From: Anthoceros angustus
Lineage: Eukaryota > Plantae > Anthocerotophyta
Assembly: GCA_010909165.1 (NCBI GenBank)
Contig: MU008230.1
Span: 1 to 41,496, forward strand
DNA: 41,496 nucleotides
Reading direction: 5' to 3'
Shown: piece after piece, positions 40,201 through 41,173 of the stretch
How the letters are laid out: each line of letters opens with the position of its first letter
How positions within the stretch are numbered: the first letter of the stretch is position 1
Position numbers and translations under genes: made by a program
The notes under the pieces: generated by a model
Seen by the model: only the letters and a program-made list of their open reading frames with translations
The model's database searches: none
What the model was told of the DNA's origin: nothing

Positions 40201-41170
40201 AGGGGTAGGCGATGAAGTCCCCACTTGTCAATGTCATTACAAGGTGTGTTGAAGTCTCCCATAATGAGCGTTGGGCTAGGAAATCGCCAAGAGTTCTCAA
40301 GTCGGTGCTTGATCTCCTTCGAGCTATTCGAGCATCACGGTGTCGACGCTATGGGACATATATAGAACCGGCCAAGGGATAGATCCGTCGACCCCCGAGG
40401 GCAAACCGAATAGGGGCTAGGAATCCCAAGGGGCCACTCGATTCGCGGGACACTACCAAAGCAAGGCCACGTGCACCAATGAGAGGATTGTCGGTGCTAG
40501 AGATCGTCTCGAACCCGGGGCAGAGGCGGTGGCCATTCGCTACCGGGTTTCTTGCAAAGCCAAGATACCCGACTAGTGGCCATTTGGCTCATGAGTTCCC
40601 TGCGCTTGTGGCGAACTCCGTTTATGTTCCAAGAGGCAAATCGGAGACTGGGGAAGGGGCCAAGCAAGGGTCCTTTGGCGGTGCATAGGGGACATGAGGT
40701 TTAACGAAAAGGCGCGACCTAGGATCGACTTCATCCACCGTGAGGGCCCCAATCCGGTGGAAATCCTAAGGAAAATGTCAAACCTCGTCCTACACTCCTC
40801 CCCATCTTGGTCTCGAGCGGTCCCACTTCACAATGTTTTGCATGACCAGTTGGTAGAATGGCGAGGGTCTTGAAAGCAGTAAGAGCGCCCCAAATGCACC
40901 CTCGAGTAATACTTAGGAAAGCGGTGCAAATGGGCGGAGAAGCGCCATGGCGTGGGGTCTCAGTACGGTCACAAAGGGTCAGTCGAGATTGCGGCTAGCT
41001 CGACACGTGAGAAGGGCGATGTTGCTTCCCCAACTCCGGAGTAGAGGACGTGAGCAACACCGCCTACCCCTACTAGTAAGAGACTTGGCCGAGCTTTGCA
41101 ACTCTCGGTCACAGACCGCCACTTGGGGGCGTCTCTCCAAGGCACGTAGCATATGTCTTGTTTATTGGTC
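37208..41170 (-). mobile_element. Non-LTR retrotransposon (APE-RT-CCHC) inserted in 25S rDNA, same orientation as the rRNA; 11 bp TSD
   Basis: TSD CGTCACTAATT at 37197-37207 and 41171-41181. APE motifs FASWNING (40640-40617), LQET, MGDFN (40262), LSDN; RT motifs QAGFR...YIDFRKAYDTVPHEAL, GCP...LFNVFINDLL, LLYHDD; C-terminal HLLLEC. Confidence 0.95.
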
Positions 41171-41173
41171 CGT
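41079..41173 (-). ncRNA. Predicted HDV-like self-cleaving ribozyme at the 5' end of the rDNA retrotransposon
   Basis: P1 ACGGACC/GGUCUGU; P2 AGAGAC/GUCUCU; P3 GCC/GGC; L3 CCCAAGU; P4 hairpin with GCAA tetraloop; J4/2 G-C-C-A-A with putative catalytic C at 41088; all in HDV order. Confidence 0.8.

Follow-up and report, generated by a model that had tools for sequence, protein, structure and literature searches.

A candidate HDV-like ribozyme at the 5′ edge of a sense-oriented APE-type LINE in a plant-type 28S rRNA gene

LINEs that reside in ribosomal DNA and are processed by a ribozyme are known from animals, R2 being such an element, and their proteins are being developed as site-specific gene-insertion tools. 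HDV-like ribozymes have been described at the 5′ edge of R2, R4, Dong, Baggins, RTE and L1Tc (PMC3774820, PMC6765202). R2 ribozymes often take the 5′ strand of helix P1 from the 28S rRNA, with cuts as far as 36 nt ahead of the junction, and for the lineages that cut 13–36 nt inside the 28S it has been proposed that the retained target sequence primes a precise 5′ junction (PMC3774820). Long, structured J1/2 strands are also on record, in R2 and in the drz-Agam-2 ribozyme (PMC3774820, PMC4908430). A sequence-only reading of DNA from Anthoceros angustus had placed a ribozyme of this kind at the border between an rRNA gene and a retrotransposon, citing the R2 precedent of a 28S-derived P1 and cleavage within the 28S, and it described that precedent accurately (PMC3774820).

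The window, by which we mean the whole stretch of DNA analyzed (41,496 nt of contig MU008230.1), carries a eukaryotic rDNA unit on its minus strand, as found by running Rfam over the whole window, and the rRNA is of plant (streptophyte) type. All features described below lie on this strand. The upstream part of the 28S/25S gene occupies 41171–41496 (Rfam LSU_rRNA_eukarya, model positions 1978 to ~2310) and is co-oriented with the LINE that interrupts it. Sequence reading together with Rfam set the last 28S base at G41171 and the first LINE base at G41170. By direct reading, the 11-bp sequence AATTAGTGACG stands at 41171–41181 and again at 37197–37207. Past the downstream copy a local Rfam alignment showed that normal 28S resumes, with the remainder of the gene at 36155–37196 (Rfam). 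As the 28S continues on both sides and the direct repeat AATTAGTGACG brackets the intervening DNA, we conclude that this is an insertion with an 11-bp target-site duplication (TSD). Measured from the R2 insertion point, which falls between TAAGG and TAGCC, the upstream TSD copy begins 21 nt further downstream. A group I or other rDNA intron was ruled out, since the insert has an APE endonuclease and a reverse transcriptase (RT) and is flanked by a TSD. Right after the downstream TSD copy, at 37191–37196, the sequence reads CCAAGA where the 28S consensus has CGCA; this could be a scar of top-strand nick repair, or local decay.

Past the 28S and a spacer come the 18S gene (33179–31406, Rfam) and then the 5.8S gene. 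Rfam also found the next 28S gene, at 30681–29988, which breaks off after ~700 nt of its 5′ end and is followed by unrelated sequence. What the window spans seems to be either the margin of an rDNA array or an orphan unit.

The insert is a single-ORF APE-type non-LTR retrotransposon of 3,963 nt (37208–41170), oriented like the rRNA gene and identified by six-frame translation, Pfam RVT_1 and tblastn. Its first ATG, at 40948, lies ~130 nt downstream of the ribozyme-like motif. Six-frame translation showed APE endonuclease motifs N-terminal to the RT (SWNINGVR near 40650 and GDFN near 40250), as well as RT motifs at 39243–38540, among them YIDFRKAYDTVPHE and YHDD. Pfam RVT_1 gave weak matches to two pieces of the LINE, a possible Cys/His motif was seen near 37800, and distant relatives of the element carry Exo_endo_phos. 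At its 3′ end the LINE joins the 28S precisely, with no poly(A) tail in between. The hallmarks of R2 were absent, as the endonuclease is of APE type and not a C-terminal restriction-like (PD-(D/E)xK) one, and the insertion is displaced from the R2 site by the 21 nt given above.

The reading frame of the LINE is broken many times, and tblastn pieces are spread over all three frames. This copy reads as dead, and part of the damage may be assembly error. When the 18S (31406–33179) and 28S (36155–37117) sequences were compared with the Rfam consensus, nearly all differences were deletions of 1–8 nt, with few substitutions. The deletions strike universally conserved sites too; part of the 18S GCCAGCAGCCGCGGUAA loop, for example, is gone. 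Either the rDNA unit has decayed or the assembly errors are biased towards deletions. Across the whole window, the number of homopolymer runs declines geometrically with length up to 5 nt and drops to almost none beyond that (for A, 38 runs of 5 vs. 1 of 6), a shortage that hints at assembly problems, which would also give false frameshifts in the LINE.

The helices and joining strands that had been listed for an HDV-like fold at 41173–41079 are present, with P1, P2, P3, L3, J1/4, P4 and J4/2 all found at their claimed positions by sequence reading and by script. The P1 5′ strand, ACGGACC (41167–41173), consists of ACG, identical to the end of the rRNA and TSD, followed by GACC, the first 4 nt of the LINE. 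Its partner GGUCUGU (41111–41117) comes directly after the P3 3′ strand, and together they form 7 pairs (41173–41167 with 41117–41111), 6 Watson-Crick and one G-U. Within the 360 nt upstream, no sequence other than ACGGACC offered the P1 3′ strand 7 pairs of which 6 or more were Watson-Crick. Further into the 28S, the sequence GCGGACC (41440–41446), in an expansion helix, can also make 7 pairs with the P1 3′ strand, the first of them the canonical G-U. Cleavage there (41446–41440) is physically possible and was considered unlikely, because the site is 273 nt upstream and within a stable 28S expansion helix.

J1/2 is 30 nt long (41137–41166) and has a weak predicted hairpin (-4.0 kcal/mol), possibly a P1.2-like peripheral element. 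P2 is formed by AGAGAC (41131–41136) and GUCUCU (41079–41084), with 6 Watson-Crick pairs between 41136–41131 and 41079–41084 and a seventh, G-U pair possible at 41137/41078. P3 has 3 bp, GCC (41128–41130) pairing with GGC (41120–41118). It is capped by the 7-nt L3, CCCAAGU (41121–41127), in which G41122 occupies the conserved G position and C41127 stands where the family has U. J1/4 was read directly as GA (41109–41110). P1.1, for which at least one C-G pair from L3 to J1/4 is looked for, has a single Watson-Crick pair, G41110–C41125, and at its second position C41126 lies opposite A41109, a non-standard combination. The 20-nt P4 hairpin (41089–41108) has two predicted forms, one with 5 bp and a 10-nt loop (-6.1 kcal/mol) and the other with 7 bp, a GA bulge and a GCAA tetraloop (-5.1 kcal/mol). 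J4/2 is CCAA (41085–41088), so that a cytosine, C41088, is present at the catalytic position that opens a short J4/2 of the form C-N-R-A; here the arrangement is C-N-A-A, which we take to correspond to C75-G-A-A of HDV, and C41088 is the candidate general acid. The strands follow one another in the order of the double pseudoknot (P1-J1/2-P2-P3-L3-P3′-P1′-J1/4-P4-J4/2-P2′), with P2/P3 and P3′/P1′ contiguous. From this fold, self-cleavage is predicted between G41174 and A41173, 5′ of the first base of P1.

Taken as isolated helices, P1 (-7.1 kcal/mol), P2 (-5.2 kcal/mol), P3 (-3.0 kcal/mol) and P4 (-5 to -6 kcal/mol) were all predicted to be favorable. Prediction restricted to nested pairs, which is blind to pseudoknots, gave a minimum-free-energy fold no better than those of shuffled sequences (-25 kcal/mol, z = -0.45). 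Its alternative pairing ties up the P3 5′ strand and competes with P3.

Whether such a layout arises readily by chance was assessed with a loose and a tight HDV descriptor, both scored on the window and on shuffles. The loose descriptor was uninformative: shuffles averaged 1.8 loci, and the window had 5. The tight descriptor additionally demanded C at L3 position 2, a G opening J1/4, a J4/2 of C-N-R-A and a perfect 7-bp P1 within 60 nt. Its rules came from general knowledge of the family and were written after the candidate had been seen, so the numbers that it yields are somewhat generous. In the window it matched the candidate and a (GC)n spacer repeat (35791–35662), whilst it had no matches in 60 whole-window dinucleotide shuffles (both strands), nor when the local 400 nt were shuffled 20,000 times.

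In the spacer, the (GC)n-rich repeat at 35662–35795 and an array of 7-nt TCTAGGG-type units at 34953–35017 both satisfy loose HDV descriptors. These spacer-repeat matches were set aside as false positives, given their low complexity.

The permissive behavior of the loose descriptor, the passage of a (GC)n repeat through the tight one and the late composition of that descriptor are what speaks for an unrelated GC-rich 5′ UTR that resembles a ribozyme by accident. Such an accident is, in our estimate, very improbable in view of the empty shuffle sets, and these give no credit for position: the motif begins at most 3 nt from the 5′ boundary of the LINE, on the sense strand. The fold, its topology and its place at the LINE edge are non-random, and chance is a poor explanation for them.

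The candidate departs from the family in several respects. Two departures had been pointed out before, an A-U pair in place of the first G-U pair of P1 (A41173–U41111) and the single Watson-Crick pair of P1.1. Both are there, but a more serious one, C for U in L3, had been missed. A G-U pair at the cleavage site is common in the HDV-like family and is not universal. The L3 signature, a reverse wobble between U at position 1 and G at position 6, is broken at its first member (C41127), whereas G41122 is retained at the other. U at position 1 and G at position 6 were invariant in 508 natural HDV variants and have been called part of the family signature, the two forming a reverse-wobble pair near the active-site metal ion of HDV (PMC3386971). 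When all 16 combinations at these positions were tested in a trans-acting antigenomic ribozyme, cleavage was seen with U/G and, at rates 232–528-fold lower, with C/A, U/U, G/G and U/A; the other 11, C/G included, were inactive (PMC3386971). With C41127 at the start of L3, this LINE copy may thus cleave poorly or not at all, and with one signature feature failed we do not file the candidate as a proven member of the HDV-like family.

An Infernal search had been suggested as a check, and when run it matched no ribozyme family. At the gathering score, Rfam returned rRNAs only for the whole window. At E-values up to 10, a 401-nt stretch and a 66-nt core stretch gave no HDV, CPEB3, drz-Agam, HDV-F-prausnitzii or other family, although the Rfam ribozyme models are narrow and can score neither pseudoknots nor a 30-nt J1/2.

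These observations bear on whether the structure is catalytic at all. The C at the signature U of L3, the A-U pair at the cleavage site and the empty Rfam result would suit a 5′ UTR structure that merely resembles HDV, such as a pseudoknot that binds protein or serves translation initiation, or else a ribozyme already dead before this lineage arose; the 5′ pseudoknots of R2 are themselves protein-binding sites and proposed IRES-like elements (PMC6765202). A structural role, however, would have no need of the exact core layout that has been kept here, namely a 4-nt C-N-A-A J4/2, a 3-bp GC-only P3, a 7-nt L3 with its C and G, and a P1 placed at the junction. We therefore think a non-catalytic structure unlikely.

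The origin of the first three bases of P1 allows a different account of the same ribozyme. These bases had been ascribed to the rDNA TSD, and ACG is indeed identical to the TSD end, but an 8-bp duplication with a 3-nt overlap, next to an element that starts ACGGACC, fits the sequence as well as the 11-bp duplication does. An HDV-like ribozyme by descent would then have a P1 wholly encoded by the element, with ACG as microhomology at the 5′ junction. It would cleave where the element itself begins, as do the ribozymes of Drosophila R2, R4, Baggins and L1Tc, with no coupling to the rRNA target and no need for the LINE to be specific for rDNA. An element-encoded P1 would agree with the facts that a single copy is known, that ACG travels with any RNA cut at 41174/41173 and that HDV-like ribozymes also occur in LINEs that lack site-specificity (PMC6765202). 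The insertion nevertheless lies in the small 28S region used by other rDNA-specific elements, 21 nt from the R2 site, and the sense orientation and the precise 3′ junction lacking poly(A) fit a dedicated rDNA element, each of these being a weak point when drawn from a single copy. An entirely element-encoded P1 is in our view possible but doubtful.

Regardless of the length of the duplication, four of the seven bases in the P1 5′ strand are encoded by the element. The sequence-only reading had further held that self-processing requires correct insertion of the element. This does not follow, as the cleaved RNA carries ACG to any new site: because the RNA starts with ACG, a full-length copy has a complete P1 wherever it lands. 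BLAST of the element against the window showed no second LINE copy there, and the case for rDNA site-specificity is built on the single copy in the window.

Relatives of the 5′ region were sought by BLAST of the window and by metagenome, viral-contig and protein searches, and none was found. Scanning viral contigs for the ribozyme core gave no match. A metagenome scan for the junction word (the 28S end plus G) returned 13 loci, all chance matches except one. At this exception (L011:900–1416, metagenome contig OFEN01036458.1) there are ~300-nt tandem repeats, each ending in a degenerate 28S segment, TAGCCAAAT...CATCTAATTAGTGA...; it was rejected, as the repeat contains a piece of the 28S but is unrelated to the LINE.

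On the protein side, neither the 208-aa C-terminal piece nor the 102-aa RT piece had close relatives. An exhaustive search with the RT piece found distant LINE RTs only, the best being 69–72% identical over ~55 aa, and the only match with a species name was from the fern Adiantum nelumboides. At four loci of relatives (L001, L002, L016 and L017) no 5′ UTR similarity to the LINE was seen, and scans of L001 and L002 showed no rRNA flank and no HDV-like motif. Sequence searches against the PDB did not resolve the clade of the LINE.

Taking these data together, we judge it probable that the 5′ end of this sense-inserted APE-type LINE encodes an HDV-like double-pseudoknot ribozyme, or a recently decayed relic of one, that serves to free the LINE RNA from the rRNA co-transcript. 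RNA polymerase I would read through the insertion, and the RNA would fold into P1-P2-P3-P1.1-P4 with C41088 of J4/2 acting as general acid. A cut between G41174 and A41173 would release an uncapped LINE RNA that has a 5′-OH and starts ACG-GACC. The first three bases of that RNA are identical to the last three of the TSD, which would allow the cDNA end to anneal to the nicked top strand and yield a precise 5′ junction, as has been proposed for R2. The fold may in addition aid translation of the uncapped RNA, a role proposed for the R2 and L1Tc ribozymes, and the small J1/2 hairpin could act like the rate-raising peripheral domain of large HDV-like ribozymes (PMC4908430).

In a bolder version of this proposal, the single-ORF APE-type LINEs of plants would include a lineage that has come independently to the R2 life style. 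This lineage would occupy one 25S/28S site, travel in the Pol I transcript and use an HDV-like ribozyme that cuts 3 nt inside the rRNA, so that each RNA carries the microhomology which rebuilds the junction, and the ribozyme would be an active variant with C at L3 position 1. We put this forward tentatively and consider it rather unlikely to hold as a whole. If true, it would represent convergence, a plant element doing what R2 does by means of another endonuclease and at another 28S position, and possibly a new targeting module. Activity with C in place of the “invariant” L3 uridine would be informative about the function of the metal-binding U-G pair. Should this copy be no more than a decayed relic, it would simply add one more case to a familiar class. 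Plant host, APE-type LINE, 28S position and the unusual L3 are the new features of an otherwise well-known kind.

Among ribozymes unconnected with transposons, the mammalian CPEB3 ribozyme resembles the candidate in its 7-nt L3 ending in GU, its single Watson-Crick P1.1 pair, its 2-nt J1/4 and a J4/2 of C-G-A-A type. It differs in having U at L3 position 1, a G-U pair at the cleavage site, a short J1/2 and an intronic location, and the Rfam CPEB3 model did not match the candidate.

With R2 the candidate shares a sense insertion in the 28S, presumed co-transcription by Pol I and a 5′ double pseudoknot with a long J1/2, and, with some R2 lineages, rRNA bases in the P1 5′ strand, by which the RNA would retain target sequence able to prime second-strand synthesis. 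The mode of action outlined above is likened to those of the R2 and L1Tc ribozymes. R2, however, has a restriction-like endonuclease and is found in animals, whereas the present LINE is of APE type and sits in plant-type rDNA, downstream of the R2 site. R2 uses 13–36 nt of rRNA where the candidate uses 3 nt, and its core reads CC-UCCUCGU-GG (PMC5035012), compared with an L3 of CCCAAGU here. L1Tc and NARTc (PMC3185411, PMC4035085), like the element described here, belong to the APE/RT LINEs with no evident promoter of their own, and a 5′ HDV-like ribozyme frees them from the co-transcript of the host, as is proposed here. Baggins and RTE, in the account of Ruminski et al. (2011) relayed in PMC6765202, are likewise APE/RT LINEs with a 5′ HDV-like ribozyme. 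In contrast to the candidate as we read it, L1Tc/NARTc, Baggins and RTE are not rDNA-specific and have a P1 that is wholly element-encoded. As an inserted element, the LINE can be compared with the target-specific LINEs of the R1 and Tx1 clades (R1, R6, R7, RT and others; PMC4640811), which are also APE-type, occupy a conserved 28S site, make a short duplication and lack poly(A). R1 and Tx1 have two ORFs and are reported from animals, whereas the LINE in this plant-type rDNA has room for one ORF.
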